Assembly: GCA_047495785.1 (NCBI GenBank)
Contig: JBLDXI010000084.1
Location: 49,964-113,963, forward strand
Direction: 5' to 3'
DNA: 64,000 nt
Source of the DNA: Lepidodermella squamata
Lineage: Eukaryota > Animalia > Gastrotricha
Position numbers and translations under genes: made by a program. The notes below the pieces were generated by a model. The model made no database searches. It saw only the letters and a list, made by a program, of their open reading frames with translations, and was not told the DNA's origin. Shown piece by piece: positions 9,611-64,000 of this stretch; the stretch's first letter is position 1, and each line of letters begins with the position of its first letter.

Positions 9611-9684
9611 TGCTTGACATTTTCGGCGGCAAGCTCTCTTTTTCGTACCAAAGCCTACAATTGACATTGCAAAGCTCAAAAACT

Positions 9685-29485: not shown

Positions 29486-29849
29486 AATTCGATATTTGTC
29501 TGACGAGTACGAGCACGAGTACAGAGTCTATATCTGAACGGAGCCGGCCGAGATTTACGAATCGGAACGAGTCGCAGACGAGTGGAGATGAGTAAATCGA
29601 GTACGGCGAGTTCAGATATAAACGATTTACGAGTGCTGTATCAAAAAATATTGCATGAGCAATATCAAAAAATACTAACACTATATTTTTGAAACGAATG
29701 CTATATTTTTATAACATTCGTATATCTGAACTCGTCGTACTCGATTTACTCATCTCTACTCGCCTCCGGCTCGTTTCGATTCGTAAATCCCGGCCGGCTC
29801 CGTTCAGATATGAACTCTTTACTAATGTTATACCATACAAATATGAATT
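29486..29849. mobile_element. Foldback/MITE-like long imperfect inverted repeat
   Basis: atatctgaacggagccggccgagatttacgaatc... at ~29530 is reverse-complementary to ...gattcgtaaatcccggccggctccgttcagatat at ~29780-29810; arms roughly 150 bp. Confidence 0.7.
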
Positions 29850-30081
29850 AGTGAAATTGCATTAAGTATTGAATTGTCTGAGTTTCGAAAGCTCCTCAGG
29901 GTGCGATCAAGAAATGTAAGAATGTCAAGCGCACTCCGAAGCTAAGGCCGTCATGAGACATGACAACGAATTCGATTTGTTACAAATATCACAAGAAGTA
30001 CGCGGCCTTCAACCATCGAATTATAAGGCACTGCCTTCTATTTTTTCGGAGGGTTTGCGCGCGTTCGCCACCGTTGTTTAT

Positions 30082-40964: not shown

Positions 40965-42077
40965 TGAATGATGCAACGTCACCTTATAGTAGTCACCTAA
41001 CACAAACACACTCAATCGCAGTCAACAATGCCTTCCTATTCCTGTTTAATACCTACCTATTTTGTTCAATTATTATTTCTTGATGTTGCAACTTGTACGC
41101 GTATTTTTAAATGATGCCATTGCAATTTTTGTGTTTTATTGATTCGCTTTACTACAAGGATTCTTCATCATCAACAACAACAACAACAACGGTGATTTCA
41201 TATTATTTAAAATGTGTACTTATGATTCAAGCTCTTGCAATACCAGCAACACGTTGATATTTCCGTATACCTAGAGTGATGATGATATACAATCAATTGT
41301 TTCATCTGTTTGAGGTAATGATGGCCAATAGTACCAAGTTGATGATGATGATGATAAGGCCAGCATTGCCGCTGATGTGATTTACTGACATGCCAACATG
41401 ACTTCTTACTTGTTCGTCTTTATCTTTCATTGACCGAGTGTCAAACTGTTTTTCATCATCAAATGCAACTGCTATTATTGCTATTATTATTATTATGGTT
41501 CCAATCAATTCCAATCGCCATGACGATGAGCGGCTATAGACGCAGGCCAAATTTTCTACTTTTAAACGCATGTTCAATGTTTGTAACAAGCTTGCGAGGT
41601 TTTTCTTGGCCGGGCTGCTGCAAAGAAATGCTATTTTTAGTAGTAGTATTATTATTATCTCACCGTGTTATATCGGTATTTTATTTATACATACTTACTC
41701 GTCGTTCTTCGTTTACATTTCAATTGATTGATTGATTGATTGATTAAAGAACCGGTTCTAAGGCAAACCACGACATTCGACTTGCTATGCTATGCTATGG
41801 TTGTTTGACATGGCACGGCAATTTTTAATGCATGCCTCGATTTGTTTTGTTTCGGTTGTTTTCAAACTTTTCTAATAATTAATTTATTGATTGCTATTAT
41901 TTTACTATCGCTGCTGCTGCTGCTGTTATCATTGTCAATGTTACAATTACCTACTGATGAATTGGAAAACTGCAGTTGAATAAATGAGAAAGTCTATTTT
42001 CATTCGATTGGATTCAGCCTTGCCATTCATTACTGATTGTTTTTTATAGGCCGTTGCTATATAATATAAAAACCAGA

Positions 42078-42458
42078 ATGCTGGCGGTGCAGCAACGTGT
42101 GTTGGCGACGCTGACGGCGACGACGAAAACCGTGCGCAAACACGTGCCGATGATCCGCTTCCGCAAGGCCGCCGGCGCCGCCCCCGCCGCATCGCCAAGC
42201 AGCAGCAACACCATGGCGACTTCCGCATCAGCGTCGGCTGCAGCTTCATCGACATCGACATCGTCGAGGAGCGGCCGGCTGGTGGCGCGCGTGCTGTCGT
42301 ACGACGACGCGCGGTTGGCGCCGCTGCGACTCCGCCGCTCGCCGCTCGCCGCCGACGAGATCGACGCCGTCAACTCGGGCGGCGCTTCCATCTTCTTCTC
42401 ACCACCGCCACCGTCGGCGCCGAAACAAGGCGCGGCCAAGACGACCAAGTCCAAGTGA
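42078..42458 (+). CDS. MRPS36: KGD4/MRPS36-like mitochondrial 2-oxoglutarate dehydrogenase adaptor
   Basis: Presequence-like N-terminus, HVPMIRF motif, low-complexity linker, C-terminal RLRRSPL..DEIDAVNSGG motif. Confidence 0.75.
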   Translation: MLAVQQRVLATLTATTKTVRKHVPMIRFRKAAGAAPAASPSSSNTMATSASASAAASSTSTSSRSGRLVARVLSYDDARLAPLRLRRSPLAADEIDAVNSGGASIFFSPPPPSAPKQGAAKTTKSK

Positions 42459-43586
42459 CCCCCAAGATTTATTCGCTAATCTAGAGACGAATCTTCCCCG
42501 CGCTCGCGAGCCCACTCTCGTCGTGTATTTTATGCCTGTTAGATTGAAAATGAATGACCACAACCCATCCTGAGCCATTCTATTTTTGACTAATTTTCTG
42601 ATCGAAACAAAGAAAAGAATAAAAGAATTCTGCGATTGTCGTAGCACATGGCTTTCACGTTTGCTTTTTTTTAAATGTAATTTGATGTAAATACGTACAG
42701 AGCACGCGAGTCTTCCACCTTGCCTTCCACGCAGACACAATCGAGGAGAAAAGACAGGAAAATCACGAAATGCATGCTATTCCAGAATAGATTATTTATT
42801 CAGAAATAGATTGTTTACCTGAGTTTTAATTACCTATAACTATCATAACATGGCATTTTTAACATCATCTTTATGTTATCATTGCCTTCATACTAATAGC
42901 CAACAATATTCAACAAAAGATGAGAAGAAGAAAGGCAAGACACTCAGGAGTACCCGTGAAGCAAGGCGGGACGATAATTGAATTCCGGTAAGCTCTCGTA
43001 GGTAGACCGGTAGCAAGCTACCTATCATGGTCATCAACAATTTTTTAATTTCACCAAAAAAGCTATGCAATTTTTGTCGCCGGGTAGTTCTATAGCAATC
43101 TATAGCCGAGCACCATAGGCCGCATAGCAAGCGCCCTTGCCTGATTCCGCGGCTGCTGGCTTCTAATCGCTACGCCGGTAGTTGCGCCCGTTGTGGCAGC
43201 CAGCGACAACAACGCGTACATGTCAGCATTCTGCAGCGTTTCGTACCAACGAACGTGGGCACGGTCGTGGGTTCGATTCCCGCATGCGAAGTAACCCGAA
43301 ATCGTCGCCTGATGTCGAATTAAACGCGGTTAGCGCTATTGCAACGCCCGCAACGCATAGCTGCAGAACATCGTTGCCGATGATCACTGCAATGCTTATT
43401 TCAGCCGATATTCACTAGATCAGCAGGGAAATGAGCACCATCGGCCGCATAGCAAGCGCCCTTGCCTGATTCCGCCGCTGCTGGCTTCTTATCGCTACGC
43501 CGGTAGTTGCGCCCGTTGTGGCAGCCAGTGACGACAGCGCGTACATGTCAGCATTCTGCAGCGTTTCGTACCAACGAACGTGGGCA

Positions 43587-45165
43587 CACTGTAAAAATTT
43601 GCACGGGTTTTGCTGGCGGAGGTTTAGCCAAAAAACAATTACAATACTAAAAGAATAATTACAACAGTCGTCGCACGAAAAAAGTCTGTTAACAATCGTT
43701 GTTGTAACGCTTCCTGCAGCTGTGAGACTCGACCACCCATCACAAAAGCAATTACAAAACCGAAATTGTTCTGATAACGGTTCCTGTAACGTTTCGGTGC
43801 AATGCCTCCCGGAATCTATAACTGCCATCCCGTCTAGTGAGATTTGAAATGGGCCAAAGAACACGCATTTTTGGGTCGGCAGTTCGCATTATTAGGGGTA
43901 ATAAAAATAACGCACGCGCGCGCACTGGCCACACTGGCATGCCACGTCGTTCGTTTTTACTTATTACGCTCGTCGTCATTCATAAAATAACGTTCGTTAG
44001 CTTAAGAGCTGAAGACTTTAACTCACGATTATTCTTATAACTTATCAATGATTTCTACCATGTCCTACAAGTGATTTGAGTGATTTGAAATTTGAAGGTA
44101 ATTTTGCCGCTCTTGAAATTAATGAAACTAAAATTGTATTCCAGCTAGGCTCCTATGGCTCATCCTCTGCGTCAAGCGCCAGCGGGAATTTAAATTCGGA
44201 TAATGCCTATCAGGTCGAGTTCGAAGCTTAGCTTTTTCAATTATTTCTCATTTCTTTCATACCAACAGGTAAAATCTTGTGCAGGCGCTCTGTGTACACC
44301 TTGACTGGACATCGGTCCTGGCATCCTTAATCCGAATAATGCTGCCCACTATTTCCCACAAAATCTCCTTCTCGATCCTGTGCATGATTTTATCTGAAGG
44401 TTGGTTTTGTTATTGCAACTACCTATATCTCGGACTTATTTTTTGTAATTCCAACATAGGAGTCGATCGATACCTGTTATCCGACTCGCTTAGTTTCGCT
44501 GTCACTTGGTACGGTTTGACTGCAGGAGACTTGAACGCAGCCCTCGAAGGATTTCAATGGGACAGCCTGGAGAAATGCGAAGGACATCCCCGAACCCGAG
44601 TTGTACAGCCCAGCTCGACTTCCATCTCTATCAAGCTGTCTGCTACTCATCGCAGAATTTCGACATCTCGTTTAGAACTACCTATATAGAGTGACCCTAG
44701 AGTGACCTGACTTGCTGTCTCGCTGACTGACTGAACTTTGACTGCGTGATCTTTCGACCTCTTCTCCATAGCACAGCTATTGCTAGACAATGCGCACTGT
44801 ATGTTTCTTGTTTTTCGATTTTGCACAATGTCTGGTGCCATAGATTTTCATTGAATTTTTGATTCTTATTCTAATTCAAAGTCTTTTGTTAAGATTTTCT
44901 TTACTTATATAATGCCCTACAATATTGCTTATATTACCTTATATTGCTCCTCAATAAAGTCAGACATGAATGGCAGAAAAACGACTTGTAATGGGTTTTA
45001 CAGGCACAAGGAAGTGTTACATTGAGGTGAGCACCGCGACGGGAAATTAACAGTTACACAACGGCTTTTCGTAATTCCTTTTGCAATGGGTTCTACTGTA
45101 CTTTTGTAATGCTAAGCTGTAACTGTTTTTTCATATAGTAAAAAATCGTTCAAATTTTTACAGTG
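43587..45165. mobile_element. Non-autonomous CACTA/EnSpm (CMC)-type DNA transposon, 1579 bp
   Basis: TIRs CACTGTAAAAATTTG(C/A)ACG (19 bp, 1 mismatch), 2-bp TSD CA when compared with empty monomers, subterminal repeats, no transposase ORF. Confidence 0.88.
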
Positions 45166-45563
45166 CACGGTCGTGGGTTCGATTCCCGCATGCGAAGTAA
45201 TCCGAAATCGTCGCCTGATGTCGAATTAAACGCGGTTAGCGCTATTGCAACGCCCGCAACGCATAGCTGCAGAACATCGTTGCCGATGAGCACTGCAATG
45301 CCTATTTCAGCCGATATTCACTTGATCAGCAGCGAAATGAGCACCATCGGCCGCATAGCAAGCGCCCTTGCCTGATTCCGCGGCTGCTGGCTTCTAATCG
45401 CTACGACGGTAGTTGCGCCCGTTGTGGCAGCCAGTGACGACAACGCGTACATGTCAGCATTCTGCAGCGATTCGTACCAACGAACGTGGGCACGGTCGTG
45501 GGTTCGATTCCCGCATGCGAAGTAACCCGAAATCGCCATGGCCCATCACAGCAAGCTCTCGCC

Positions 45564-46643
45564 ATGGCCCATCACAGCAAGCTCGTGGCTGTGTTCTTGG
45601 ACTTCAAGGCCGCCTTCGATACGGTCTGGCACGCAGGGCTTATACAAAAACTGATCGATTCTGGAGCCCCGGAGCCTTTGGTGCGATGGACAGCGAACTT
45701 CCTAGACGACCGATCGTTTCAGGTCCGAGTTGGAGACGAGCTCAGCGAATCAAGAAAAATCGGCTGCGGTGTGCCACAAGGTAGCCCGTTGAGTCCGCTG
45801 CTGTTCATATTTTACTGCGCGGATATGCAGCCTCCGGAGTCAAACCCTGACGACGGGAGAAAAGCGGTCGCCGCCGGGACCTACGCAGACGACGCCGCAA
45901 ACTGGGCATGGGGCCCGCATTACGAGCAGTGCGTTGTAAGACTACAAGCCCGCCTCCGATCCACCGAAGCGTGGTGCGCGAAATGGCGTCTAGAACTTAA
46001 TCCGGCGAAATGCGAAAGCATTCTAATCGGCCACACTGGCGCTTCGTCCCCGTCGGTTCTTCTCTCCATTGCTGGTCGACGAATCCCTCAAGTCAACGAA
46101 GTAAAATACCTAGGAATCACGATCACGGCGAAATTGTCGTGGGAACGCCACCTCGACCGTCTGTCTGCGAAGACGAAACCGCGAGCTGCCTGCCTCAGAG
46201 GAATAGCTTGTAGGCGCATTGTCCCCAGCGATCTTTGCATCATGTTCAGCCGAGTCCTCATCGACAGCTTGCTCACATATGGATCTCCAGCCTGGTACTG
46301 TCTGCCAAAAACCTCCGAACTGCGCCTTTTCAACTTTCAAGCACACGGGTTAAGAGCAGCAATGGATCTGCCATTTGAGTGCGATTCCTTCGGAGTCGTC
46401 GTCGAAGCGAAGGCGGCAGCAATCAGCGACGTCTTTGAGAAGCAACTGGAGCGCTATGGCGAACGCTGTCTCACCGCGGACAATGGCATGAAAGAGTACT
46501 TGCAGTATATCGCCAGTCAGCAGCCTGATGCCTTCGGCAAGCGGATGCTCGACCTACACTGTCCAGCCTGGCACCTACGCCGCAATGTCGCCCCCTCAAT
46601 GGCGCAAAATAAGAGAATCACAGATTTCTTCAACCCTCGATAG
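45564..46643 (+). CDS. C-terminal part of LINE reverse transcriptase (uninterrupted frame, N-terminus lost)
   Basis: FLDFKAAFDTVWH, GVPQGSPLSPLLF, YADD, KYLGITI motifs. Confidence 0.9.
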   Translation: MAHHSKLVAVFLDFKAAFDTVWHAGLIQKLIDSGAPEPLVRWTANFLDDRSFQVRVGDELSESRKIGCGVPQGSPLSPLLFIFYCADMQPPESNPDDGRKAVAAGTYADDAANWAWGPHYEQCVVRLQARLRSTEAWCAKWRLELNPAKCESILIGHTGASSPSVLLSIAGRRIPQVNEVKYLGITITAKLSWERHLDRLSAKTKPRAACLRGIACRRIVPSDLCIMFSRVLIDSLLTYGSPAWYCLPKTSELRLFNFQAHGLRAAMDLPFECDSFGVVVEAKAAAISDVFEKQLERYGERCLTADNGMKEYLQYIASQQPDAFGKRMLDLHCPAWHLRRNVAPSMAQNKRITDFFNPR

Positions 46644-46779
46644 CCTTTACTGCCTTGTTTTATTGTTGCGTTCCCTTGTTGAGCCTTTAGGTCCTTGGAG
46701 CCCCTGTGCACGAGCCCTAAGCCTTCCCGAACCTGGAACGTAAGTCACGTTAAATGAGCCTCTGTAATTTCTTGTTCCA

Positions 46780-46875
46780 GAGCCTGAGCCTGAGCCTGAG
46801 CCCTGAGCCTGAGCCTGAGCCTGACATCTAACACCGGATTCTTGAGCCTGAGCCCTGACCCTTTGAGCCTTCAGC
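46780..46875 (+). repeat. (GAGCCT)n microsatellite in LINE 3' UTR
   Basis: gagcctgagcctgagcctgagccctgagcctgagcctgagcctga plus degenerate copies. Confidence 0.85.
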
Positions 46876-47577
46876 CCTATGAAGAGCCTGATGTGATATG
46901 GGTGTATATATGCATCGTAAGCCGTTTTCAAATGAGTTAACCCCTGCCTTCGATCTTTTCAGAAAATCCGCCCTGAGCCCTAGCCACTATAGCCCTGAAA
47001 TGAGCCTTTCAACTTGCCCGTCAAAGCCGCGAAGGTCGACCAACGAATCAACAATTTTCTACTTTTCTATTCAAACCAATATAAAAAACCGGCAAGAAAA
47101 AAAAATATATATATATATAAACAATAACAACTATAAAAAACTCCTATGATCGAGATACATGCGTGTTCGACTAGAGCCCTGATTAGCATGGGGGCAAGTT
47201 ATTTCTGTAATCTTTCTAACTCATGTGCCTATAGCGTCGAAAGGCGGAGGGCCTATAATAATAAAACTACAACATGCTAAGTAACCCGAAATCGTCGCCT
47301 GATGTCGAATTAAACGCGGTTAGCGCTATTGCAACGCCCGCAACGCATAGCTGCAGAACATCGTTGCCGATGAGCACTGCAATGCCTATTTCAGCCGATA
47401 TTCACTTGATCAGCAGCGAAATGAGCACCATCGGCCGCATAGCAAGCGCCCTTGCCTGATTCCGCGGCTGCTGGCTTCTAATCGCTATGCCGGTGGTTGC
47501 GTACGTTGTGGCAGCCAGTGACGACAGCGCGTACATGTCAGCATTCTGCAGCGATTCGTACCAACGAACGTGGGCAC

Positions 47578-47598
47578 GGTCGTGGGTTCGATTCCCGC
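47578..47598 (+). promoter_or_regulatory. Pol III B-box within tRNA T-arm-like hairpin (representative copy; one per satellite monomer)
   Basis: GGTC-GTGGG-TTCGATT-CCCGC matches GGTTCGANTCC and forms a 5-bp stem with a 7-nt loop. Confidence 0.7.
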
Positions 47599-50500
47599 AT
47601 GCGAAGTAACCCGAAATCGTCGCCTGATGTCGAATTAAACGCTGTTAGAGCTATTGCAACGCCCGCAACGCATAGCTGCAGAACATCGTTGCCGATGAGC
47701 ACTGCAATGCCTATTTCAGCCGATATTCACTTGATCAGCAGCGAAATGAGCACCATCGGCCGCATAGCAAGCGCCCTTGCCTGATTCCGCGGCTGCTGGC
47801 TTCTAATCGCTACGCCGGTGGTTGCGTACGTTGTGGCAGCCAGTGACGACAGCGCGTACATGTCAGCATTCTGCAGCGATTCGTACCAACGAACGTGGGC
47901 ACGGTCGTGGGTTCGATTCCCGCATGCGAAGTAATCCGAAATCGTCGCCTGATGTCGAATTAAACGCTGTTAGAGCTATTGCAACGCCCGCAACGCATAG
48001 CTGCAGAACATCGTTGCCGATGAGCACTGCAATGCCTATTTCAGCCGATATTCACTTGATCAGCAGCGAAATGAGCACCATCGGCCGCATAGCAAGCGCC
48101 CTTGCCTGATTCCGCGGCTGCTGGCTTCTAATCGCTACGCCGGTAGTTGCGCCCGTTGTGGCAGCCAGCGACAACAACGCGTACATGTCAGCATTCTGCA
48201 GCGTTTCGTACCAACGAACGTGGGCACGGTCGTGGGTTCGATTCCCGCATGCGAAGTAACCCGAAATCGTCGCCTGATGTCGAATTAAACGCTGTTAGAG
48301 CTATTGCAACGCCCGCAACGCATAGCTGCAGAACATCGTTGCCGATGAGCACTGCAATGCCTATTTCAGCCGATATTCACTTGATCAGCAGCGAAATGAG
48401 CACCATCGGCCGCATAGCAAGCGCCCTTGCCTGATTCCGCGGCTGCTGGCTTCTTATCGCTACGCCGGTAGTTGCGCCCGTTGTGGCAGCCAGCGACAAC
48501 AACGCGTACATGTCAGCATTCTGCAGCGTTTCGTACCAACGAACGTGGGCACGGTCGTGGGTTCGATTCCCGCATGCGAAGTAACCCGAAATCGTCGCCT
48601 GATGTCGAATTAAACGCGGTTAGCGCTATTGCAACGCCCGCAACGCATAGCTGCAGAACATCGTTGCCGATGAGCACTGCAATGCTTATTTCAGCCGATA
48701 TTCACTAGATCAGCAGCGAAATGAGCACCATCGGCCGCATAGCAAGCGCCCTTGCCTGATTCCGCGGCTTCTGGCTTCTAATCGCTACGACGGTAGTTGC
48801 GCCCGTTGTGACAGCCAGTGACGACAACGCGTACATGTCAGCATTCTGCAGCGATTCGGACCAACGAACGTGGGCACGGTCGTGGGTTCGATTCCCGCAT
48901 GCGAAGTAACCCGAAATCGTCACCTGATGTCGAATTAAACGCGGTTAGCGCTATTGCAACGCCCGCAACGCATAGCTGCAGAACATCGTTGCCGATGAGC
49001 ACTGCAATGCTTATTTCAGCCGATATTCACTAGATCAGCAGCGAAATGAGCACCATCGGCCGCATAGCAAGCGCCCTTGCCTGATTCCGCGGCTGCTGGC
49101 TTCTAATCGCTACGCCGGTAGTTGCGCCCGTTGTGGCAGCCAGTGACGACAGCGCGTACATGTCAGCATTCTGCAGCGTTTCGTACCAACGAACGTGGGC
49201 ACGGTCGTGGGTTCGATTCCTGCATGCGAAGTAACCCGAAATCGTCGCCTGATGTCGAATTAAACGCGGTTAGCGCTATTGCAACGCCCGCAACGCATAG
49301 CTGCAGAACATCGTTGCCGATGAGCACTGCAATGCTTATTTCAGCCGATATTCACTAGATCAGCAGCGAAATGAGCACCATCGGCCGCATAGCAAGCGCC
49401 CTTGCCTGATTCCGCGGCTTCTGGCTTCTAATCGCTACGACGGTAGTTGCGCCCGTTGTGACAGCCAGTGACGACAACGCGTACATGTCAGCATTCTGCA
49501 GCGATTCGGACCAACGAACGTGGGCACGGTCGTGGGTTCGATTCCCGCATGCGAAGTAACCCGAAATCGTCGCCTGATGTCGAATTAAACGCGGTTAGAG
49601 CTATTGCAACGCCCGCAACGCATAGCTGCAGAACATCGTTGCCGAGGAGCACTGCAATGCCTATTTCAGCCGATATTCACTTGATCAGCAGCGAAATGAG
49701 CACCATCGGCCGCATAGCAAGCGCCCTTGCCTGATTCCGCGGCTTCTGGCTTCTAATCGCTACGCCGGTAGTTGCGCCCGTTGTGGCAGCCAGTGACGAC
49801 AACGCGTACATGTCAGCATTCTGCAGCGTTTCGTACCAACGAACGTGGGCACGGTCGTGGGTTCGATTCCCGCATGCGAAGTAACCCGAAATCGTCGCCT
49901 GATGTCGAATTAAACGCGGTTAGCGCTATTGCAACGCCCGCAACACATAGCTGCAGAACATCGTTGCCGATGAGCACTGCAATGCCTATTTCAGCCGATA
50001 TTCACTAGATCAGCAGCGAAATGAGCACCATCGGCCGCATAGCAAGCGCCCTTGCCTGATTCCGCGGCTTCTGGCTTCTAATCGCTACGACGGTAGTTGC
50101 GCCCGTTGTGACAGCCAGTGACGACAACGCGTACATGTCAGCATTCTGCAGCGATTCGGACCAACGAACGTGGGCACGGTCGTGGGTTCGATTCCCGCAT
50201 GCGAAGTAACCCGAAATCGTCGCCTGATGTCGAATTAAACGCGGTTAGAGCTATTGCAACGCCCGCAACGCATAGCTGCAGAACATCGTTGCCGAGGAGC
50301 ACTGCAATGCCTATTTCAGCCGATATTCACTTGATCAGCAGCGAAATGAGCACCATCGGCCGCATAGCAAGCGCCCTTGCCTGATTCCGCGGCTGCTGGC
50401 TTCTAATCGCTACGCCGGTAGTTGCGCCCGTTGTGGCAGCCAGCGACAACAACGCGTACATGTCAGCATTCTGCAGCGTTTCGTACCAACGAACGTGGGC

Positions 50501-53500
50501 ACGGTCGTGGGTTCGATTCCCGCATGCGAAGTAACCCGAAATCGTCGCCTGATGTCGAATTAAACGCGGTTAGCGCTATTGCAACGCCCGCAACGCATAG
50601 CTGCAGAACATCGTTGCCGATGAGCACTGCAATGCCTATTTCAGCCGATATTCACTAGATCAGCAGCGAAATGAGCACCATCGGCCGCATAGCAAGCGCC
50701 CTTGCCTGATTCCGCGGCTGCTGGCTTCTTATCGCTACGCCGGTAGTTGCGCCCGTTGTGACAGCCAGTGACGACAGCGCGTACATGTCAGCATTCTCCA
50801 GCGTTTCGTACCAACGAACGTGGGCACGGTCGTGGGTTCGATTCCCGCATGCGAAGTAATCCGAAATCGTCGCCTGATGTCGAATTAAACGCTGTTAGAG
50901 CTATTGCAACGCCCGCAACGCATAGCTGCAGAACATCGTTGCCGATGAGCACTGCAATGCCTATTTCAGCCGATATTCACTTGATCAGCAGCGAAATGAG
51001 CACCATCGGCCGCATAGCAAGCGCCCTTGCCTGATTCCGCGGCTGCTGGCTTCTAATCGCTACGACGGTAGTTGCGCCCGTTGTGACAGCCAGTGACGAC
51101 AACGCGTACATGTCAGCATTTTGCAGCGATTCGGACCAACGAACGTGGGCACGGTCGTGGGTTCGATTCCCGCATGCGAAGTAACCCGAAATCGTCGCCT
51201 GATGTCGAATTAAACGCGGTTAGCGCTTTTGCAACGCCCGCAACGCATAGCTGCAGAACATCGTTGCCGATGAGCACTGCAATGCCTATTTCAGCCGATA
51301 TTCACTAGATCAGCAGCGAAATGAGCACCATCGGCCGCATAGCAAGCGCCCTTGCCTGATTCCGCGGCTGCTGGCTTCTAATCGCTACGCCGGTGGTTGC
51401 GTACGTTGTGGCAGCCAGTGACGACAGCGCGTACATGTCAGCATTCTGCAGCGATTCGTACCAACGAACGTGGGCACGGTCGTGGGTTCGATTCCCGCAT
51501 GCGAAGTAACCCGAAATCGTCGCCTGATGTCGAATTAAACGCGGTTAGCGCTATTGCAACGCCCGCAACGCATAGCTGCAGAACATCGTTGCCGATGAGC
51601 ACTGCAATGCCTATTTCAGCCGATATTCACTAGATCAGCAGCGAAATGAGCACCATCGGCCGCATAGCAAGCGCCCTTGCCTGATTCCGCGGCTGCTGGC
51701 TTCTAATCGCTACGACGGTAGTTGCGCCCGTTGTGACAGCCAGTGACGACAACGCGTACATGTCAGCATTTTGCAGCGATTCGGACCAACGAACGTGGGC
51801 ACGGTCGTGGGTTCGATTCCCGCATGCGAAGTAACCCGAAATCGTCGCCTGATGTCGAATTAAACGCTGTTAGAGCTATTGCAACGCCCGCAACGCATAG
51901 CTGCAGAACATCGTTGCCGATGAGCACTGCAATGCCTATTTCAGCCGATATTCACTTGATCAGCAGCGAAATGAGCACCATCGGCCGCATAGCAAGCGCC
52001 CTTGCCTGATTCCGCGGCTGCTGGCTTCTAATCGCTACGACGGTAGTTGCGCCCGTTGTGACAGCCAGTGACGACAACGCGTACATGTCAGCATTTTGCA
52101 GCGATTCGGACCAACGAACGTGGGCACGGTCGTGGGTTCGATTCCCGCATGCGAAGTAACCCGAAATCGTCGCCTGATGTCGAATTAAACGCGGTTAGCG
52201 CTTTTGCAACGCCCGCAACGCATAGCTGCAGAACATCGTTGCCGATGAGCACTGCAATGCCTATTTCAGCCGATATTCACTAGATCAGCAGCGAAATGAG
52301 CACCATCGGCCGCATAGCAAGCGCCCTTGCCTGATTCCGCGGCTGCTGGCTTCTAATCGCTACGCCGGTGGTTGCGTACGTTGTGGCAGCCAGTGACGAC
52401 AGCGCGTACATGTCAGCATTCTGCAGCGATTCGTACCAACGAACGTGGGCACGGTCGTGGGTTCGATTCCCGCATGCGAAGTAACCCGAAATCGTCGCCT
52501 GATGTCGAATTAAACGCGGTTAGCGCTATTGCAACGCCCGCAACGCATAGCTGCAGAACATCGTTGCCGATGAGCACTGCAATGCCTATTTCAGCCGATA
52601 TTCACTAGATCAGCAGCGAAATGAGCACCATCGGCCGCATAGCAAGCGCCCTTGCCTGATTCCGCGGCTGCTGGCTTCTTATCGCTACGCCGGTAGTTGC
52701 GCCCGTTGTGGCAGCCAGTGACGACAGCGCGTACATGTCAGCATTCTGCAGCGTTTCGTACCAACGAACGTGGGCACGGTCGTGGGTTCGATTCCCGCAT
52801 GCGAAGTAATCCGAAATCGTCGCCTGATGTCGAATTAAACGCTGTTAGAGCTATTGCAACGCCCGCAACGCATAGCTGCAGAACATCGTTGCCGATGAGC
52901 ACTGCTATGCCTATTTCAGCCGATATTCACTTGATCAGCAGCGAAATGAGCACCATCGGCCGCATAGCAAGCGCCCTTGCCTGATTCCGCGGCTGCTGGC
53001 TTCTTATCGCTACGCCGGTAGTTGCGCCCGTTGTGGCAGCCAGCGACAACAACGCGTACATGTCAGCATTCTGCAGCGTTTCGTACCAACGAACGTGGGC
53101 ACCGTCGTGGGTTCGATTCCCGCATGCGAAGTAACCCGAAATCGTCGCCTGATGTCGAATTAAACGCGGTTAGCGCTATTGCAACGCCCGCAACGCATAG
53201 CTGCAGAACATCGTTGCCGATGAGCACTGCAATGCTTATTTCAGCCGATATTCACTAGATCAGCAGCGAAATGAGCACCATCGGCCGCATAGCAAGCGCC
53301 CTTGCCTGATTCCGCGGCTGCTGGCTTCTTATCGCTACGCCGGTAGTTGCGCCCGTTGTGGCAGCCAGTGACGACAGCGCGTACATGTCAGCATTCTGCA
53401 GCGTTTCGTACCAACGAACGTGGGCACGGTCGTGGGTTCGATTCCCGCATGCGAAGTAATCCGAAATCGTCGCCTGATGTCGAATTAAACGCTGTTAGAG

Positions 53501-56500
53501 CTATTGCAACGCCCGCAACGCATAGCTGCAGAACATCGTTGCCGATGAGCACTGCAATGCCTATTTCAGCCGATATTCACTTGATCAGCAGCGAAATGAG
53601 CACCATCGGCCGCATAGCAAGCGCCCTTGCCTGATTCCGCGGCTGCTGGCTTCTAATCGCTACGACGGTAGTTGCGCCCGTTGTGACAGCCAGTGACGAC
53701 AACGCGTACATGTCAGCATTCTGCAGCGATTCGGACCAACGAACGTGGGCACGGTCGTGGGTTCGATTCCCGCATGCGAAGTAATCCGAAATCGTCGCCT
53801 GATGTCGAATTAAACGCGGTTAGCGCTATTGCAACGCCCGCAACGCATAGCTGCAGAACATCGTTGCCGATGAGCACTGCAATGCTTATTTCAGCCGATA
53901 TTCACTAGATCAGCAGCGAAATGAGCACCATCGGCCGCATAGCAAGCGCCCTTGCCTGATTCCGCGGCTGCTGGCTTCTTATCGCTACGCCGGTAGTTGC
54001 GCCCGTTGTGGCAGCCAGTGACGACAGCGCGTACATGTCAGCATTCTGCAGCGATTCGTACCAACGAACGTGGGCACGGTCGTGGGTTCGATTCCCGCAT
54101 GCGAAGTAATCCGAAATCGTCGCCTGATGTCGAATTAAACGCGGTTAGCGCTATTGCAACGCCCGCAACGCATAGCTGCAGAACATCGTTGCCGATGAGC
54201 ACTGCAATGCTTATTTCAGCCGATATTCACTAGATCAGCAGCGAAATGAGCACCATCGGCCGCATAGCAAGCACCCTTGCCTGATTCCGCGGCTGCTGGC
54301 TTCTTATCGGTACGCCGGTAGTTGCGCCCGTTGTGGCAGCCAGTGACGACAGCGCGTACATGTCAGCATTCTGCAGCGTTTCGTACCAACGAACGTGGGC
54401 ACGGTCGTGGGTTCGATTCCCGCATGCGAAGTAACCCGAAATCGTCGCCTAATGTCGAATTAAACGCGGTTAGCGCTATTGCAACGCCCGCAACGCATAG
54501 CTGCAGAACATCGTTGCCGATGAGCACTGCAATGCTTATTTCAGCCGATATTCACTAGATCAGCAGCGAAATGAGCACCATCGGCCGCATAGCAAGCGCC
54601 CTTGCCTGATTCCGCGGCTGCTGGCTTCTTATCGCTACGCCGGTAGTTGCGCCCGTTGTGGCAGCCAGTGACGACAGCGCGTACATGTCAGCATTCTGCA
54701 GCGTTTCGTACCAACGAACGTGGGCACGGTCGTGGGTTCGATTCCCGCATGCGAAGTAACCCGAAATCGTCGCCTGATGTCGAATTAAACGCGGTTAGCG
54801 CTATTGCAACGCCCGCAACGCATAGCTGCAGAACATCGTTGCCGATGAGCACTGCAATGCCTATTTCAGCCGATATTCACTAGATCAGCAGCGAAATGAG
54901 CACCATCGGCCGCATAGCAAGCGCCCTTGCCTGATTCCGCGGCTGCTGGCTTCTTATCGCTACGCCGGTAGTTGCGCCCGTTGTGACAGCCAGTGACGAC
55001 AGCGCGTACATGTCAGCATTCTCCAGCGTTTCGTACCAACGAACGTGGGCACGGTCGTGGGTTCGATTCCCGCATGCGAAGTAATCCGAAATCGTCGCCT
55101 GATGTCGAATTAAACGCTGTTAGAGCTATTGCAACGCCCGCAACGCATAGCTGCAGAACATCGTTGCCGATGAGCACTGCAATGCCTATTTCAGCCGATA
55201 TTCACTTGATCAGCAGCGAAATGAGCACCATCGGCCGCATAGCAAGCGCCCTTGCCTGATTCCGCGGCTGCTGGCTTCTAATCGCTACGACGGTAGTTGC
55301 GCCCGTTGTGACAGCCAGTGACGACAACGCGTACATGTCAGCATTTTGCAGCGATTCGGACCAACGAACGTGGGCACGGTCGTGGGTTCGATTCCCGCAT
55401 GCGAAGTAACCCGAAATCGTCGCCTGATGTCGAATTAAACGCGGTTAGCGCTTTTGCAACGCCCGCAACGCATAGCTGCAGAACATCGTTGCCGATGAGC
55501 ACTGCAATGCCTATTTCAGCCGATATTCACTTGATCAGCAGCGAAATGAGCACCATCGGCCGCATAGCAAGCGCCCTTGCCTGATTCCGCGGCTGCTGGC
55601 TTCTTATCGCTACGCCGGTGGTTGCGTACGTTGTGGCAGCCAGTGACGACAGCGCGTACATGTCAGCATTCTGCAGCGATTCGTACCAACGAACGTGGGC
55701 ACGGTCGTGGGTTCGATTCCCGCATGCGAAGTAACCCGAAATCGTCGCCTGATGTCGAATTAAACGCGGTTAGCGCTATTGCAACGCCCGCAACGCATAG
55801 CTGCAGAACATCGTTGCCGATGAGCACTGCAATGCCTATTTCAGCCGATATTCACTTGATCAGCAGCGAAATGAGCACCATCGGCCGCATAGCAAGCGCC
55901 CTTGCCTGATTCCGCGGCTGCTGGCTTCTAATCGCTACGACGGTAGTTGCGCCCGTTGTGACAGCCAGTGACGACAACGCGTACATGTCAGCATTTTGCA
56001 GCGATTCGGACCAACGAACGTGGGCACGGTCGTGGGTTCGATTCCCGCATGCGAAGTAACCCGAAATCGTCGCCTGATGTCGAATTAAACGCTGTTAGAG
56101 CTATTGCAACGCCCGCAACGCATAGCTGCAGAACATCGTTGCCGATGAGCACTGCAATGCCTATTTCAGCCGATATTCACTTGATCAGCAGCGAAATGAG
56201 CACCATCGGCCGCATAGCAAGCGCCCTTGCCTGATTCCGCGGCTGCTGGCTTCTAATCGCTACGACGGTAGTTGCGCCCGTTGTGACAGCCAGTGACGAC
56301 AACGCGTACATGTCAGCATTTTGCAGCGATTCGGACCAACGAACGTGGGCACGGTCGTGGGTTCGATTCCCGCATGCGAAGTAACCCGAAATCGTCGCCT
56401 GATGTCGAATTAAACGCGGTTAGCGCTTTTGCAACGCCCGCAACGCATAGCTGCAGAACATCGTTGCCGATGAGCACTGCAATGCCTATTTCAGCCGATA

Positions 56501-59500
56501 TTCACTAGATCAGCAGCGAAATGAGCACCATCGGCCGCATAGCAAGCGCCCTTGCCTGATTCCGCGGCTGCTGGCTTCTAATCGCTACGCCGGTGGTTGC
56601 GTACGTTGTGGCAGCCAGTGACGACAGCGCGTACATGTCAGCATTCTGCAGCGATTCGTACCAACGAACGTGGGCACGGTCGTGGGTTCGATTCCCGCAT
56701 GCGAAGTAACCCGAAATCGTCGCCTGATGTCGAATTAAACGCGGTTAGCGCTATTGCAACGCCCGCAACGCATAGCTGCAGAACATCGTTGCCGATGAGC
56801 ACTGCAATGCCTATTTCAGCCGATATTCACTAGATCAGCAGCGAAATGAGCACCATCGGCCGCATAGCAAGCGCCCTTGCCTGATTCCGCGGCTGCTGGC
56901 TTCTTATCGCTACGCCGGTAGTTGCGCCCGTTGTGGCAGCCAGTGACGACAGCGCGTACATGTCAGCATTCTGCAGCGTTTCGTACCAACGAACGTGGGC
57001 ACGGTCGTGGGTTCGATTCCCGCATGCGAAGTAATCCGAAATCGTCGCCTGATGTCGAATTAAACGCTGTTAGAGCTATTGCAACGCCCGCAACGCATAG
57101 CTGCAGAACATCGTTGCCGATGAGCACTGCAATGCCTATTTCAGCCGATATTCACTTGATCAGCAGCGAAATGAGCACCATCGGCCGCATAGCAAGCGCC
57201 CTTGCCTGATTCCGCGGCTGCTGGCTTCTAATCGCTACGACGGTAGTTGCGCCCGTTGTGACAGCCAGTGACGACAACGCGTACATGTCAGCATTCTGCA
57301 GCGATTCGGACCAACGAACGTGGGCACGGTCGTGGGTTCGATTCCCGCATGCGAAGTAATCCGAAATCGTCGCCTGATGTCGAATTAAACGCGGTTAGCG
57401 CTATTGCAACGCCCGCAACGCATAGCTGCAGAACATCGTTGCCGATGAGCACTGCAATGCTTATTTCAGCCGATATTCACTAGATCAGCAGCGAAATGAG
57501 CACCATCGGCCGCATAGCAAGCGCCCTTGCCTGATTCCGCGGCTGCTGGCTTCTTATCGCTACGCCGGTAGTTGCGCCCGTTGTGGCAGCCAGTGACGAC
57601 AGCGCGTACATGTCAGCATTCTGCAGCGATTCGTACCAACGAACGTGGGCACGGTCGTGGGTTCGATTCCCGCATGCGAAGTAATCCGAAATCGTCGCCT
57701 GATGTCGAATTAAACGCGGTTAGCGCTATTGCAACGCCCGCAACGCATAGCTGCAGAACATCGTTGCCGATGAGCACTGCAATGCTTATTTCAGCCGATA
57801 TTCACTAGATCAGCAGCGAAATGAGCACCATCGGCCGCATAGCAAGCACCCTTGCCTGATTCCGCGGCTGCTGGCTTCTTATCGGTACGCCGGTAGTTGC
57901 GCCCGTTGTGGCAGCCAGTGACGACAGCGCGTACATGTCAGCATTCTGCAGCGTTTCGTACCAACGAACGTGGGCACGGTCGTGGGTTCGATTCCCGCAT
58001 GCGAAGTAACCCGAAATCGTCGCCTAATGTCGAATTAAACGCGGTTAGCGCTATTGCAACGCCCGCAACGCATAGCTGCAGAACATCGTTGCCGATGAGC
58101 ACTGCAATGCTTATTTCAGCCGATATTCACTAGATCAGCAGCGAAATGAGCACCATCGGCCGCATAGCAAGCGCCCTTGCCTGATTCCGCGGCTGCTGGC
58201 TTCTTATCGCTACGCCGGTAGTTGCGCCCGTTGTGGCAGCCAGTGACGACAGCGCGTACATGTCAGCATTCTCCAGCGTTTCGTACCAACGAACGTGGGC
58301 ACGGTCGTGGGTTCGATTCCCGCATGCGAAGTAACCCGAAATCGTCGCCTGATGTCGAATTAAACGCGGTTAGCGCTATTGCAACGCCCGCAACGCATAG
58401 CTGCAGAACATCGTTGCCGATGAGCACTGCAATGCCTATTTCAGCCGATATTCACTAGATCAGCAGCGAAATGAGCACCATCGGCCGCATAGCAAGCGCC
58501 CTTGCCTGATTCCGCGGCTGCTGGCTTCTTATCGCTACGCCGGTAGTTGCGCCCGTTGTGACAGCCAGTGACGACAGCGCGTACATGTCAGCATTCTCCA
58601 GCGTTTCGTACCAACGAACGTGGGCACGGTCGTGGGTTCGATTCCCGCATGCGAAGTAATCCGAAATCGTCGCCTGATGTCGAATTAAACGCTGTTAGAG
58701 CTATTGCAACGCCCGCAACGCATAGCTGCAGAACATCGTTGCCGATGAGCACTGCAATGCCTATTTCAGCCGATATTCACTTGATCAGCAGCGAAATGAG
58801 CACCATCGGCCGCATAGCAAGCGCCCTTGCCTGATTCCGCGGCTGCTGGCTTCTAATCGCTACGACGGTAGTTGCGCCCGTTGTGACAGCCAGTGACGAC
58901 AACGCGTACATGTCAGCATTTTGCAGCGATTCGGACCAACGAACGTGGGCACGGTCGTGGGTTCGATTCCCGCATGCGAAGTAACCCGAAATCGTCGCCT
59001 GATGTCGAATTAAACGCGGTTAGCGCTTTTGCAACGCCCGCAACGCATAGCTGCAGAACATCGTTGCCGATGAGCACTGCAATGCCTATTTCAGCCGATA
59101 TTCACTAGATCAGCAGCGAAATGAGCACCATCGGCCGCATAGCAAGCGCCCTTGCCTGATTCCGCGGCTGCTGGCTTCTAATCGCTACGCCGGTGGTTGC
59201 GTACGTTGTGGCAGCCAGTGACGACAGCGCGTACATGTCAGCATTCTGCAGCGATTCGTACCAACGAACGTGGGCACGGTCGTGGGTTCGATTCCCGCAT
59301 GCGAAGTAACCCGAAATCGTCGCCTGATGTCGAATTAAACGCGGTTAGCGCTATTGCAACGCCCGCAACGCATAGCTGCAGAACATCGTTGCCGATGAGC
59401 ACTGCAATGCCTATTTCAGCCGATATTCACTTGATCAGCAGCGAAATGAGCACCATCGGCCGCATAGCAAGCGCCCTTGCCTGATTCCGCGGCTGCTGGC

Positions 59501-62500
59501 TTCTAATCGCTACGACGGTAGTTGCGCCCGTTGTGACAGCCAGTGACGACAACGCGTACATGTCAGCATTTTGCAGCGATTCGGACCAACGAACGTGGGC
59601 ACGGTCGTGGGTTCGATTCCCGCATGCGAAGTAACCCGAAATCGTCGCCTGATGTCGAATTAAACGCTGTTAGAGCTATTGCAACGCCCGCAACGCATAG
59701 CTGCAGAACATCGTTGCCGATGAGCACTGCAATGCCTATTTCAGCCGATATTCACTTGATCAGCAGCGAAATGAGCACCATCGGCCGCATAGCAAGCGCC
59801 CTTGCCTGATTCCGCGGCTGCTGGCTTCTAATCGCTACGACGGTAGTTGCGCCCGTTGTGACAGCCAGTGACGACAACGCGTACATGTCAGCATTTTGCA
59901 GCGATTCGGACCAACGAACGTGGGCACGGTCGTGGGTTCGATTCCCGCATGCGAAGTAACCCGAAATCGTCGCCTGATGTCGAATTAAACGCGGTTAGCG
60001 CTTTTGCAACGCCCGCAACGCATAGCTGCAGAACATCGTTGCCGATGAGCACTGCAATGCCTATTTCAGCCGATATTCACTAGATCAGCAGCGAAATGAG
60101 CACCATCGGCCGCATAGCAAGCGCCCTTGCCTGATTCCGCGGCTGCTGGCTTCTAATCGCTACGCCGGTGGTTGCGTACGTTGTGGCAGCCAGTGACGAC
60201 AGCGCGTACATGTCAGCATTCTGCAGCGATTCGTACCAACGAACGTGGGCACGGTCGTGGGTTCGATTCCCGCATGCGAAGTAACCCGAAATCGTCGCCT
60301 GATGTCGAATTAAACGCGGTTAGCGCTATTGCAACGCCCGCAACGCATAGCTGCAGAACATCGTTGCCGATGAGCACTGCAATGCCTATTTCAGCCGATA
60401 TTCACTAGATCAGCAGCGAAATGAGCACCATCGGCCGCATAGCAAGCGCCCTTGCCTGATTCCGCGGCTGCTGGCTTCTTATCGCTACGCCGGTAGTTGC
60501 GCCCGTTGTGGCAGCCAGTGACGACAGCGCGTACATGTCAGCATTCTGCAGCGTTTCGTACCAACGAACGTGGGCACGGTCGTGGGTTCGATTCCCGCAT
60601 GCGAAGTAATCCGAAATCGTCGCCTGATGTCGAATTAAACGCTGTTAGAGCTATTGCAACGCCCGCAACGCATAGCTGCAGAACATCGTTGCCGATGAGC
60701 ACTGCTATGCCTATTTCAGCCGATATTCACTTGATCAGCAGCGAAATGAGCACCATCGGCCGCATAGCAAGCGCCCTTGCCTGATTCCGCGGCTGCTGGC
60801 TTCTTATCGCTACGCCGGTAGTTGCGCCCGTTGTGGCAGCCAGCGACAACAACGCGTACATGTCAGCATTCTGCAGCGTTTCGTACCAACGAACGTGGGC
60901 ACCGTCGTGGGTTCGATTCCCGCATGCGAAGTAACCCGAAATCGTCGCCTGATGTCGAATTAAACGCGGTTAGCGCTATTGCAACGCCCGCAACGCATAG
61001 CTGCAGAACATCGTTGCCGATGAGCACTGCAATGCTTATTTCAGCCGATATTCACTAGATCAGCAGCGAAATGAGCACCATCGGCCGCATAGCAAGCGCC
61101 CTTGCCTGATTCCGCGGCTGCTGGCTTCTTATCGCTACGCCGGTAGTTGCGCCCGTTGTGGCAGCCAGTGACGACAGCGCGTACATGTCAGCATTCTGCA
61201 GCGTTTCGTACCAACGAACGTGGGCACGGTCGTGGGTTCGATTCCCGCATGCGAAGTAATCCGAAATCGTCGCCTGATGTCGAATTAAACGCTGTTAGAG
61301 CTATTGCAACGCCCGCAACGCATAGCTGCAGAACATCGTTGCCGATGAGCACTGCAATGCCTATTTCAGCCGATATTCACTTGATCAGCAGCGAAATGAG
61401 CACCATCGGCCGCATAGCAAGCGCCCTTGCCTGATTCCGCGGCTGCTGGCTTCTAATCGCTACGACGGTAGTTGCGCCCGTTGTGACAGCCAGTGACGAC
61501 AACGCGTACATGTCAGCATTCTGCAGCGATTCGGACCAACGAACGTGGGCACGGTCGTGGGTTCGATTCCCGCATGCGAAGTAATCCGAAATCGTCGCCT
61601 GATGTCGAATTAAACGCGGTTAGCGCTATTGCAACGCCCGCAACGCATAGCTGCAGAACATCGTTGCCGATGAGCACTGCAATGCTTATTTCAGCCGATA
61701 TTCACTAGATCAGCAGCGAAATGAGCACCATCGGCCGCATAGCAAGCGCCCTTGCCTGATTCCGCGGCTGCTGGCTTCTTATCGCTACGCCGGTAGTTGC
61801 GCCCGTTGTGGCAGCCAGTGACGACAGCGCGTACATGTCAGCATTCTGCAGCGATTCGTACCAACGAACGTGGGCACGGTCGTGGGTTCGATTCCCGCAT
61901 GCGAAGTAATCCGAAATCGTCGCCTGATGTCGAATTAAACGCGGTTAGCGCTATTGCAACGCCCGCAACGCATAGCTGCAGAACATCGTTGCCGATGAGC
62001 ACTGCAATGCTTATTTCAGCCGATATTCACTAGATCAGCAGCGAAATGAGCACCATCGGCCGCATAGCAAGCACCCTTGCCTGATTCCGCGGCTGCTGGC
62101 TTCTTATCGGTACGCCGGTAGTTGCGCCCGTTGTGGCAGCCAGTGACGACAGCGCGTACATGTCAGCATTCTGCAGCGTTTCGTACCAACGAACGTGGGC
62201 ACGGTCGTGGGTTCGATTCCCGCATGCGAAGTAACCCGAAATCGTCGCCTAATGTCGAATTAAACGCGGTTAGCGCTATTGCAACGCCCGCAACGCATAG
62301 CTGCAGAACATCGTTGCCGATGAGCACTGCAATGCTTATTTCAGCCGATATTCACTAGATCAGCAGCGAAATGAGCACCATCGGCCGCATAGCAAGCGCC
62401 CTTGCCTGATTCCGCGGCTGCTGGCTTCTTATCGCTACGCCGGTAGTTGCGCCCGTTGTGGCAGCCAGTGACGACAGCGCGTACATGTCAGCATTCTCCA

Positions 62501-64000
62501 GCGTTTCGTACCAACGAACGTGGGCACGGTCGTGGGTTCGATTCCCGCATGCGAAGTAACCCGAAATCGTCGCCTGATGTCGAATTAAACGCGGTTAGCG
62601 CTATTGCAACGCCCGCAACGCATAGCTGCAGAACATCGTTGCCGATGAGCACTGCAATGCTTATTTCAGCCGATATTCACTAGATCAGCAGCGAAATGAG
62701 CACCATCGGCCGCATAGCAAGCGCCCTTGCCTGATTCCGCGGCTGCTGGCTTCTAATCGCTACGACGGTAGTTGCGCCCGTTGTGACAGCCAGTGACGAC
62801 AACGCGTACATGTCAGCATTCTGCAGCGTTTCGTACCAACGAACGTGGGCACGGTCGTGGGTTCGATTCCCGCATGCGAAGTAACCCGAAATCGTCGCCT
62901 GATGTCGAATTAAACGCGGTTAGCGCTATTGCAACGCCCGCAACGCATAGCTGCAGAACATCGTTGCCGATGAGCACTGCAATGCCTATTTCAGCCGATA
63001 TTCACTTGATCAGCAGCGAAATGAGCACCATCGGCCGCATAGCAAGCGCCCTTGCCTGATTCCGCGGCTGCTGGCTTCTTATCGCTACGCCGGTAGTTGC
63101 GCCCGTTGTGGCAGCCAGTGACGACAGCGCGTACATGTCAGCATTCTGCAGCGTTTCGTACCAACGAACGTGGGCACGGTCGTGGGTTCGATTCCCGCAT
63201 GCGAAGTAATCCGAAATCGTCGCCTGATGTCGAATTAAACGCTGTTAGAGCTATTGCAACGCCCGCAACGCATAGCTGCAGAACATCGTTGCCGATGAGC
63301 ACTGCTATGCCTATTTCAGCCGATATTCACTTGATCAGCAGCGAAATGAGCACCATCGGCCGCATAGCAAGCGCCCTTGCCTGATTCCGCGGCTGCTGGC
63401 TTCTTATCGCTACGCCGGTAGTTGCGCCCGTTGTGACAGCCAGTGACGACAACGCGTACATGTCAGCATTCTGCAGCGTTTCGTACCAACGAACGTGGGC
63501 ACGGTCGTGGGTTCGATTCCCGCATGCGAAGTAACCCGAAATCGTCGCCTGATGTCGAATTAAACGCGGTTAGCGCTATTGCAACGCCCGCAACGCATAG
63601 CTGCAGAACATCGTTGCCGATGAGCACTGCAATGCCTATTTCAGCCGATATTCACTTGATCAGCAGCGAAATGAGCACCATCGGCCGCATAGCAAGCACC
63701 CTTGCCTGATTCCGCGGCTGCTGGCTTCTTATCGCTACGCCGGTAGTTGCGCCCGTTGTGGCAGCCAGTGACGACAGCGCGTACATGTCAGCATTCTGCA
63801 GCGTTTCGTACCAACGAACGTGGGCACGGTCGTGGGTTCGATTCCCGCATGCGAAGTAATCCGAAATCGTCGCCTGATGTCGAATTAAACGCTGTTAGAG
63901 CTATTGCAACGCCCGCAACGCATAGCTGCAGAACATCGTTGCCGATGAGCACTGCTATGCCTATTTCAGCCGATATTCACTTGATCAACTCTCACGAGAT

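Follow-up and report, generated by a model that had tools for sequence, protein, structure and literature searches.

The literature already contains tandem repeats in which a tRNA-related stretch keeps its B box, with cases from newt, Xenopus, frogs, and snakes (PMC10702118). The amphibian cases are PolIII/TAN of the newt Cynops, with a unit of about 360 nt, OAX/satellite I of Xenopus, and Rana/polIII (PMC10702118). In snakes, sSat3 is derived from a SINE, and its 67-nt unit, which includes box B, corresponds to the 3' part of the SINE head (PMC10702118). The locus analyzed here, a 325-bp satellite in a 64,000-nt window of the genome of the gastrotrich Lepidodermella squamata, resembles the amphibian repeats in being built of tandem units, each a few hundred bases long, that contain a tRNA-related stretch and for which no matching SINE is known, and its unit length is close to that of PolIII/TAN. 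However, the tRNA-like region of the amphibian units is longer (64 nt in Rana/polIII) than the approximately 21–26 nt found in the 325-bp monomer, which moreover lacks an A box. PolIII/TAN also differs from this monomer in being transcription-capable in vitro (PMC10702118), and the amphibian repeats are abundant across the genome, whereas the satellite described here is confined to one locus with about 54 copies. With sSat3 it shares the retention of box B, and not of box A, of a tRNA-related head. The parent SINE of sSat3, Squam3, has been identified, and the whole unit aligns with it; the SINE match of the 325-bp monomer, in contrast, covers just 19 of 21 bases, and no source was found for the other ~300 bases.

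Comparable features exist outside these repeats. The ETC/COC sites of yeast likewise consist of a B box without A box or Pol III unit and may share with the satellite a boundary position near tRNA genes (PMC3395662). ETC sites, however, are single, conserved, and defined by measured TFIIIC occupancy, whereas the satellite motif resides in a homogenised repeat. The schistosome satellite SM-alpha, which has a Pol III-type internal promoter and is cited as functional (PMC2220036), offers a further parallel, but in the 325-bp satellite no hammerhead reaches the Rfam threshold and the promoter is incomplete.

A first-pass annotation had placed a satellite of about 54 units at 43108–63987, and its extent and copy number proved correct: 54 monomers of 325 bp run from 43108 to 63987 on the forward strand, in three blocks that are split by a 1.6-kb terminal inverted repeat (TIR) element and a 5'-truncated LINE. 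Block 1 (43108–43587) comprises monomer positions 151–325 and then 1–305; block 2 (45166–45535) comprises positions 303–325, one full monomer, and positions 1–22. The main array (47273–63987) contains 51.4 copies according to TRF, with 97% matches, no indels, and a pairwise identity of ~97.5%. It has a higher-order period of 24 monomers, identity reaching 98.6% at lag 24, and it terminates or is broken off at monomer position 140; the window and the contig both end 13 bases further on, and these bases (63988–64000) are non-satellite sequence. Variation among 63 monomers is confined to 34 of the 325 sites. Its head-to-tail copies, their homogenisation, and the higher-order period identify the array as satellite DNA. 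ORFs of 61–95 aa recur across it; a coding unit was nevertheless rejected, the monomer length of 325 not being divisible by 3.

In the genome as a whole, the monomer and a 25-mer consisting of T arm plus acceptor were found solely on the contig of the window (C84) and on contig C99, in 67 copies, apart from one fragment of the monomer on contig C28 that is 91 bp long, has 82–84% identity, and does not include the T arm. C99 is collinear with C84 at 89–99% identity and has the identical junction between unique DNA and satellite (43107/43108 in the window). This is a single locus that was assembled twice, representing either two haplotypes or a recent duplicate. Next to the start of the array, positions 42996–43093 match a dispersed family of 120-bp repeats. 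Dispersed SINE-like monomers with target site duplications, which the first-pass annotation had suggested looking for, did not turn up in the genome search, and no relatives of the monomer were detected in the metagenome contigs or prokaryotic genome contigs scanned.

The tRNA-like part of the monomer is a 21-mer, GGTCGTGGGTTCGATTCCCGC, which recurs every 325 bp and is exemplified by the copy at 47577–47597 (forward strand). It reads as a variable loop (GGTC) followed by a T stem (GTGGG/CCCGC) that encloses the T loop TTCGATT, and it contains the 11-base B box GGTTCGATTCC (47585–47595 in the same copy). Of the 54 copies, 51 match the 21-mer exactly and three have one mismatch each; the 13 copies on C99 all match exactly. 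The B box occurs 54 times in the satellite, at an exact spacing of 325 bp inside the blocks, so that the perfect B box in a tRNA variable loop plus T arm proposed at first reading is indeed present in 54/54 monomers; together with the copies on C99 it is intact in 67/67. It is identical to the B box of the Gly-GCC, Asp, and Glu tRNA genes of the same genome, and the reported 14/15 identity to the Ile gene was confirmed. As had also been noted, the monomer has no D arm or anticodon arm; it also has no A box or terminator. The A-box-like sequence TGGCAGCCAGTG does exist, but it does not fit the A-box consensus, and neither strand of the monomer contains a match within two mismatches of TRGCNNAGTGG. 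Likewise, the monomer consensus contains no T4 run that could serve as oligo-T terminator. In terms of sequence all 67 copies resemble ETC sites in having a consensus B box outside any functional Pol III unit.

How far the likeness to tRNAs or SINEs extends was addressed by several searches. The closest matches of the monomer are to tRNA-Thr-TGT (19/20), tRNA-Lys-CTT (22/26), and the SINE of the same genome (19/21), and neither nhmmer with a SINE profile, which scored 6.5 bits on the T arm alone, nor blastn extended these matches of 20–26 bases. The description as a "tRNA/SINE-derived satellite" can thus be upheld for at most 20–26 of the 325 bases. A pseudogene check gave no tRNA call for the monomer: ARAGORN predicted 56 tRNAs in the window, none of them past 9756 and hence none in the array, and a search of 43000–49000 against Rfam returned merely partial matches to the T arm of tmRNA (15–20 bits, compared with a gathering score of 47) and no hammerhead or other family at threshold. 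Several candidate sources were considered and rejected. Firstly, ARAGORN, Rfam, and an alignment to 44 tRNAs all speak against reading the whole monomer as a tRNA that has lost arms or carries a long intron. Secondly, an intron-bearing tRNA-Tyr was considered; a genome search with a Tyr 5' half matched at least 225 Tyr genes, which differ from the satellite in T arm and acceptor. Thirdly, the alignment with the ~275-bp tRNA-derived SINE of the genome is limited to the T arm. Lastly, sensitive blastn detected no similarity to the spacers of the neighboring tRNA cluster or to the two inserted elements. A 9-mer, CATGCGAAG, is common to the satellite and one of four SINE copies, which is not significant. 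The monomer also lacks the features of a tRNA-derived SINE, as it has no A box, no tail, and no dispersed copies. It thus represents neither a tRNA gene nor a SINE, and it does not amount to a complete Pol III transcription unit.

The 21-mer might not be tRNA-derived at all, and a GC-rich monomer could have acquired a B-box-like palindromic stretch by accident. Similarity alone is indeed borderline, with a blastn E-value of 0.07 against 128 kb of tRNA-rich DNA and an alignment to 44 distinct tRNAs that was equaled or surpassed by 7 of 2000 shuffles, and some accidental B boxes are to be expected when very many windows are surveyed. However, among random sequences matched to the monomer in length and dinucleotide composition a B box occurred in 0.2% (42/20000; 856/400000), and a B box combined with the full 5-bp T stem in just 0.016% (64/400000, or 1.6e-4). 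In addition, the GGTC variable loop stands in the correct register, and the genome, with its very many tRNA genes in arrays and its tRNA-derived SINE, is a likely source of such a fragment. For one monomer the motif is beyond chance, though it rests on about 21 bases, and an accidental origin appears improbable to us. Judged by the comparison with random sequences, the 21-mer is very probably a remnant that stems from a tRNA gene or from an element derived from one.

The monomer could also encode a small tRNA-like minihelix RNA that would either be transcribed by Pol III or be cut from longer transcripts by tRNA-processing enzymes. The proposed region (47555–47605 in the example monomer, forward strand) consists of TTCGTA, 21 nt, the T arm, and TGCGAA, and the two outer hexamers can indeed pair around the T arm like an acceptor stem, forming six pairs including one G.T. 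The fold itself, however, is not favored: at −8.5 kcal/mol it is 12.7 kcal/mol worse than the minimum free energy structure (−21.2 kcal/mol), and the z-scores are near zero (−0.11 for 71 nt and +0.83 for the whole monomer). Furthermore, 15 of 51 monomers have a T-to-G change at position 287, and the resulting uncompensated G.G mismatch breaks the acceptor stem. The missing A box and terminator and the lack of an ARAGORN or Rfam tRNA call also weigh against such an RNA, as does its distribution: no exact copy of the 24-mer that joins T arm and acceptor was found in 185,579 prokaryotic genomes or the JGI metagenomes, and the 25-mer, with three mismatches allowed, is confined to the array within its own genome. 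We therefore regard a minihelix RNA as very improbable. The missing A box and T4 run would argue against Pol III transcription of the monomer in general.

Conservation gave no indication that the B box is maintained for its own sake. As many as 28% of the 11-nt windows of the monomer are as invariant as the B box, and the 21-mer contains two variable sites compared with a mean of 2.2. The B box is thus not better conserved than other sites, a result that the first-pass annotation had itself named as speaking against its proposal, although the test has low power because the array is ~97.5% uniform, and selection on the B box may have escaped it. A T stem that is fully paired and a B box like that of working tRNA genes are slightly unexpected for an old, decaying remnant.

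Taken together, the locus is probably an ordinary single-locus satellite in which a short tRNA-derived remnant was amplified as a passenger. The 325-bp monomer would be a composite that contains a remnant of approximately 21–26 bases of a tRNA or tRNA-derived element, and it would have a consensus B box because this remnant happens to be the variable loop plus T arm. After amplification of the unit, unequal crossing-over and gene conversion would have preserved its uniformity, and the higher-order period of 24 monomers may be a trace of these processes. The intact B box in all copies would then be due to array-wide uniformity and not to selection on the motif, and we infer that it is a passenger. 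Binding of TFIIIC to a perfect B box is nonetheless plausible, but the sequence gives no sign that such binding is important.

Alternatively, TFIIIC might occupy each B box without Pol III, as at ETC sites, and the array might act as a chromatin barrier or nuclear anchor that, together with the tRNA cluster, brackets a 33-kb gene island. The bracketing proposed at first reading does exist on this contig, with the satellite on one side of the island and tRNA genes on the other. The 56 genes in the window (4–9756) are only the tip of a cluster that spans at least 59.8 kb, reaches upstream of the window to the start of C84, and has a density of ~5.6 genes per kb as estimated from three 10-kb samples. 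Besides this arrangement, an ETC-like role would be consistent with the consensus B box in every copy and its identity to that of functional tRNA gene families, with the lack of A box and terminator, and with the finding that B-box-only sites bind TFIIIC and act as boundaries in yeast (PMC3395662). On C99, however, the tRNA array does not exceed about 4.7 kb, and bracketing is thus not a fixed design. The B box also shows no excess conservation, the motif is kept at no other locus or related sequence in the genome itself or in the prokaryotic and metagenome contigs, and the satellite may be heterochromatic. An ETC-like array is, on this evidence, unlikely.

The two insertions that split the satellite have also been considered in this context. 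The TIR element (1.58 kb, 43588–45165) has the terminal inverted repeats (C)ACTGTAAAAATTTG and a target duplication of GCAC or CA; it inserted behind monomer position 305, 4 nt ahead of the T stem, and related copies are present at other sites in the genome. The second insertion is a 5'-truncated non-LTR retrotransposon (45536–47272, forward strand) with a reverse-transcriptase ORF (RVT_1, E = 2.9e-24) and a 3' tail; the target duplication on either side of it is 22 bp long and corresponds to monomer positions 1–22. Both are absent from C99, where the array runs uninterrupted. The borders of the T arm lie within a few bases of both insertions, an observation that was made post hoc and comprises two cases. 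It might indicate that a factor is bound there or that the site is fragile, and it would agree with TFIIIC occupancy. In its most extended form, such occupancy would produce a phased array of at least 54 TFIIIC-only sites, one every 325 bp or about two nucleosomes, which would act as a pair with the tRNA megacluster, serving as chromatin boundary or nuclear tether on the two sides of the 33-kb island, the bound factor making the T-arm borders preferred sites for breakage and transposon entry. This extended scenario is improbable.

If TFIIIC occupancy were true, the locus would be a naturally occurring animal example of B-box-only sites at regular intervals, located beside one of the densest tRNA clusters seen, and would lend itself well to studies of TFIIIC as an architectural protein. 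On present evidence it is one more tandem repeat with a captured piece of a tRNA, and a spiralian addition to a list that consists mostly of amphibians and reptiles. As such, the satellite fits a genome in which tRNA genes have been massively amplified and are often fragmented.

The satellite of 325-bp monomers has the extent given in the first-pass annotation. Tandem Repeats Finder reports an array at 47273–63987 (51.4 copies, 97% matches, zero indels), and direct reading of the sequence places the satellite start upstream of it, at 43108. Block 1 (43108–43587) consists of monomer positions 151–325 followed by 1–305, and block 2 (45166–45535) of positions 303–325, one complete monomer and positions 1–22. 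The array is split by an element of 1.58 kb that has terminal inverted repeats (TIRs) and a short target duplication (43588–45165), relatives of which are present elsewhere in the genome, and by a 5'-truncated non-LTR retrotransposon (LINE) at 45536–47272 (RVT_1, E = 2.9e-24), whose 22-bp target duplication corresponds to monomer positions 1–22. A perfect 26-bp direct duplication (45533–45584) lies at the LINE's 5' junction and includes the final 3 satellite bases. Inter-monomer identity is highest at a lag of 24 units. The end of the window is also the end of its contig, C84; the final 13 bases (63988–64000) are non-satellite, and this junction occurs once in the assembly.

Every monomer carries a 21-mer, GGTCGTGGGTTCGATTCCCGC, arranged like the variable loop and T arm of a tRNA: GGTC corresponds to the variable loop, GTGGG and CCCGC to the T stem (five pairs, including one G.U) and TTCGATT to the T loop. 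The satellite contains 54 copies of the B box, GGTTCGATTCC, spaced at exactly 325 bp inside the blocks, and this box is identical to that of the window's Gly-GCC, Asp and Glu tRNA genes; the previously noted 14/15 match of the T-arm stretch to the Ile gene is correct. Genome-wide, 64 exact and three one-mismatch copies of the 21-mer were found, all within the satellite. Among random sequences of monomer length and dinucleotide content, about 0.2% contain the B box and 64 of 400,000 (1.6e-4) the B box with a complete T stem. In local alignments to 44 distinct tRNAs, 7 of 2000 shuffles equalled or exceeded the monomer; blastn of the monomer against 128 kb of tRNA-rich DNA gave E = 0.07. Judged from similarity alone, the tRNA match is only borderline. 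Because it is in register with the whole T arm, and because the genome is rich in tRNA genes and tRNA-derived elements, we nevertheless regard the 21-mer as very probably a genuine tRNA-derived remnant, which is a judgement and not a computed probability.

The likeness to tRNAs or SINEs ends after 20–26 bases, as in the matches to tRNA-Thr-TGT on contig C17 (19/20), to tRNA-Lys-CTT (22/26) and to a dispersed tRNA-derived SINE of ~275 bp (19/21), the profile of which aligned to the monomer in the T arm only (6.5 bits). This SINE combines A and B boxes with a CORE/MIR-like middle (…CCTTGAGCAAG…) and ends in an (ATT)n tail; at least eight near-identical copies exist, seen for example around position 445–720 of the element-bearing strand in the genome stretches L053, L055, L056 and L057. 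ARAGORN called 56 tRNAs over the window and none inside the array, and Rfam, applied to 43000–49000, returned only sub-threshold tmRNA T-arm matches. The proposed A-box-like element TGGCAGCCAGTG does not qualify, since every site on either strand of the monomer deviates from the A-box consensus by more than two mismatches; a run of four Ts is likewise absent from both strands of the consensus monomer. A T-arm-plus-acceptor 25-mer has no genomic site outside the satellite at up to three mismatches, and no exact match to the 24-mer was found in 185,579 prokaryotic genomes or the JGI metagenomes; these searches therefore revealed neither dispersed SINE-like monomers nor a tRNA with the same 3' end. 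The suggested tRNA/SINE origin of the satellite would hold for at most these 20–26 of its 325 bases.

The acceptor-like pairing of TTCGTA with TGCGAA is possible, but the resulting minihelix (-8.5 kcal/mol) is weaker than the minimum free energy fold of the same 71 nt (-21.2), and folding is no better than in shuffled sequences (local region, z = -0.11; monomer, z = +0.83). Moreover, 15 of 51 monomers have G in place of T at monomer position 287, within TTCGTA; this turns G.U into G.G, and a compensating change at its partner was never seen in the monomers. This argues against a maintained helix around the T arm.

Per-site variation was assessed in 63 in-register monomers (51 from C84 and 12 from contig C99). 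They differ at only 34 of their 325 sites, and the longest stretch free of variation measures 40 nt. The 11-nt B box contains no variable site, but 28% of the monomer's 11-nt windows likewise have none; the 21-mer contains two against a mean of 2.2. The B box is hence not more conserved than the rest of the monomer, a result that counts against the first-pass interpretation, although this test has low power because the array is so uniform. Homogenisation by itself predicts intact B boxes in all copies. In yeast, ETC sites consisting of a B box only bind TFIIIC and have boundary activity (PMC3395662), and the present B boxes might likewise form a functional TFIIIC array. Both transposon insertions sit close to a T-arm border, no more than a few bases away: the TIR element (43587/43588) 4 nt ahead of the T stem, and the LINE (45535/45536, 47272/47273) with its 3' junction inside the 3' strand of the stem; as two cases noticed afterwards they are only a lead in this direction. 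Overall, we consider a functional TFIIIC array unlikely. The best explanation is probably an ordinary satellite in which a short tRNA-derived remnant would have been amplified as a passenger.

The monomer occurs at three places only in the whole assembly (121.2 Mb in 151 contigs as searched; 122 Mb in 157 contigs for the published L. squamata assembly, in a paper that mentions neither tRNA clusters nor satellites nor SINEs; PMC11660948): in the window, at the start of C99 (13 monomers in opposite orientation) and as one fragment on contig C28. Since C84 and C99 have the unique/satellite junction in common and C99 is collinear with window positions 9700–43107 at 89–99% identity, they represent a single locus, either as its two haplotypes or through a recent duplication. 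C99 has neither the TIR element nor the LINE, so both insertions are young. The solitary C28 fragment (22136–22226; L022 2137–2227), which has a MITE-like repeat on one side and a 5'-truncated retrotransposon on the other, is 91 bp long with 82–84% identity to monomer positions 26–117; it lacks the T arm and might be left over from a lost array or from the source of the monomer. A match (68% identity) to a ~120-bp dispersed repeat, which has at least 13 other genomic copies with identical scores, lies at 42996–43093, 15 nt before the satellite start.

On C84 the 33-kb gene island is indeed bracketed, by the satellite at one end and by a tRNA cluster spanning at least 59.8 kb at the other. The first 9.8 kb of the window hold 56 tRNA genes, and 10-kb samples of C84 upstream of it (1–10,000; 20,001–30,000; 40,001–50,000) hold 55–57 each. 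On C99, however, the tRNA array measures at most ~4.7 kb, because C99:49–59 kb is devoid of tRNA genes; the bracketing arrangement is therefore variable, and the two copies of the locus, be they haplotypes or duplicates, differ strongly in structure. Compared with C84, C99 also has 3.5 kb of additional DNA near the island edge; these differences lie at C99:39460–42950 and 44336–49000. The megacluster (C84:1–59770, its tip at window positions 4–9756) consists of repeated cassettes on both strands and extends to the contig start; 142-bp cassette pieces have identical copies in arrays on C1 and C20. Two tRNA-Phe copies in it (C84:21879–21951 and 26240–26312; L069 1879–1951 and 6240–6312) carry the anticodon AAA instead of GAA. 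At least 225 intron-bearing tRNA-Tyr genes, missed by the default ARAGORN scan, form tandem arrays with periods of ~3.4–6 kb on C1, C9, C10, C20 and C24 (e.g., L075 near position 1500).

Comparable repeats are known from other animals. A schistosome satellite has a functional Pol III promoter according to PMC2220036, and snake satellites retain box B of a SINE head (PMC10702118). The same review of SINE-derived satellites lists newt PolIII/TAN (~360 nt), Xenopus OAX/satellite I and Rana/polIII as tandem families in which part of the unit is tRNA-related and for which no SINE has been identified (PMC10702118). The array in L. squamata joins these already known tandem repeats as a further case; its tRNA-related part is unusually short, and it occupies a single locus.
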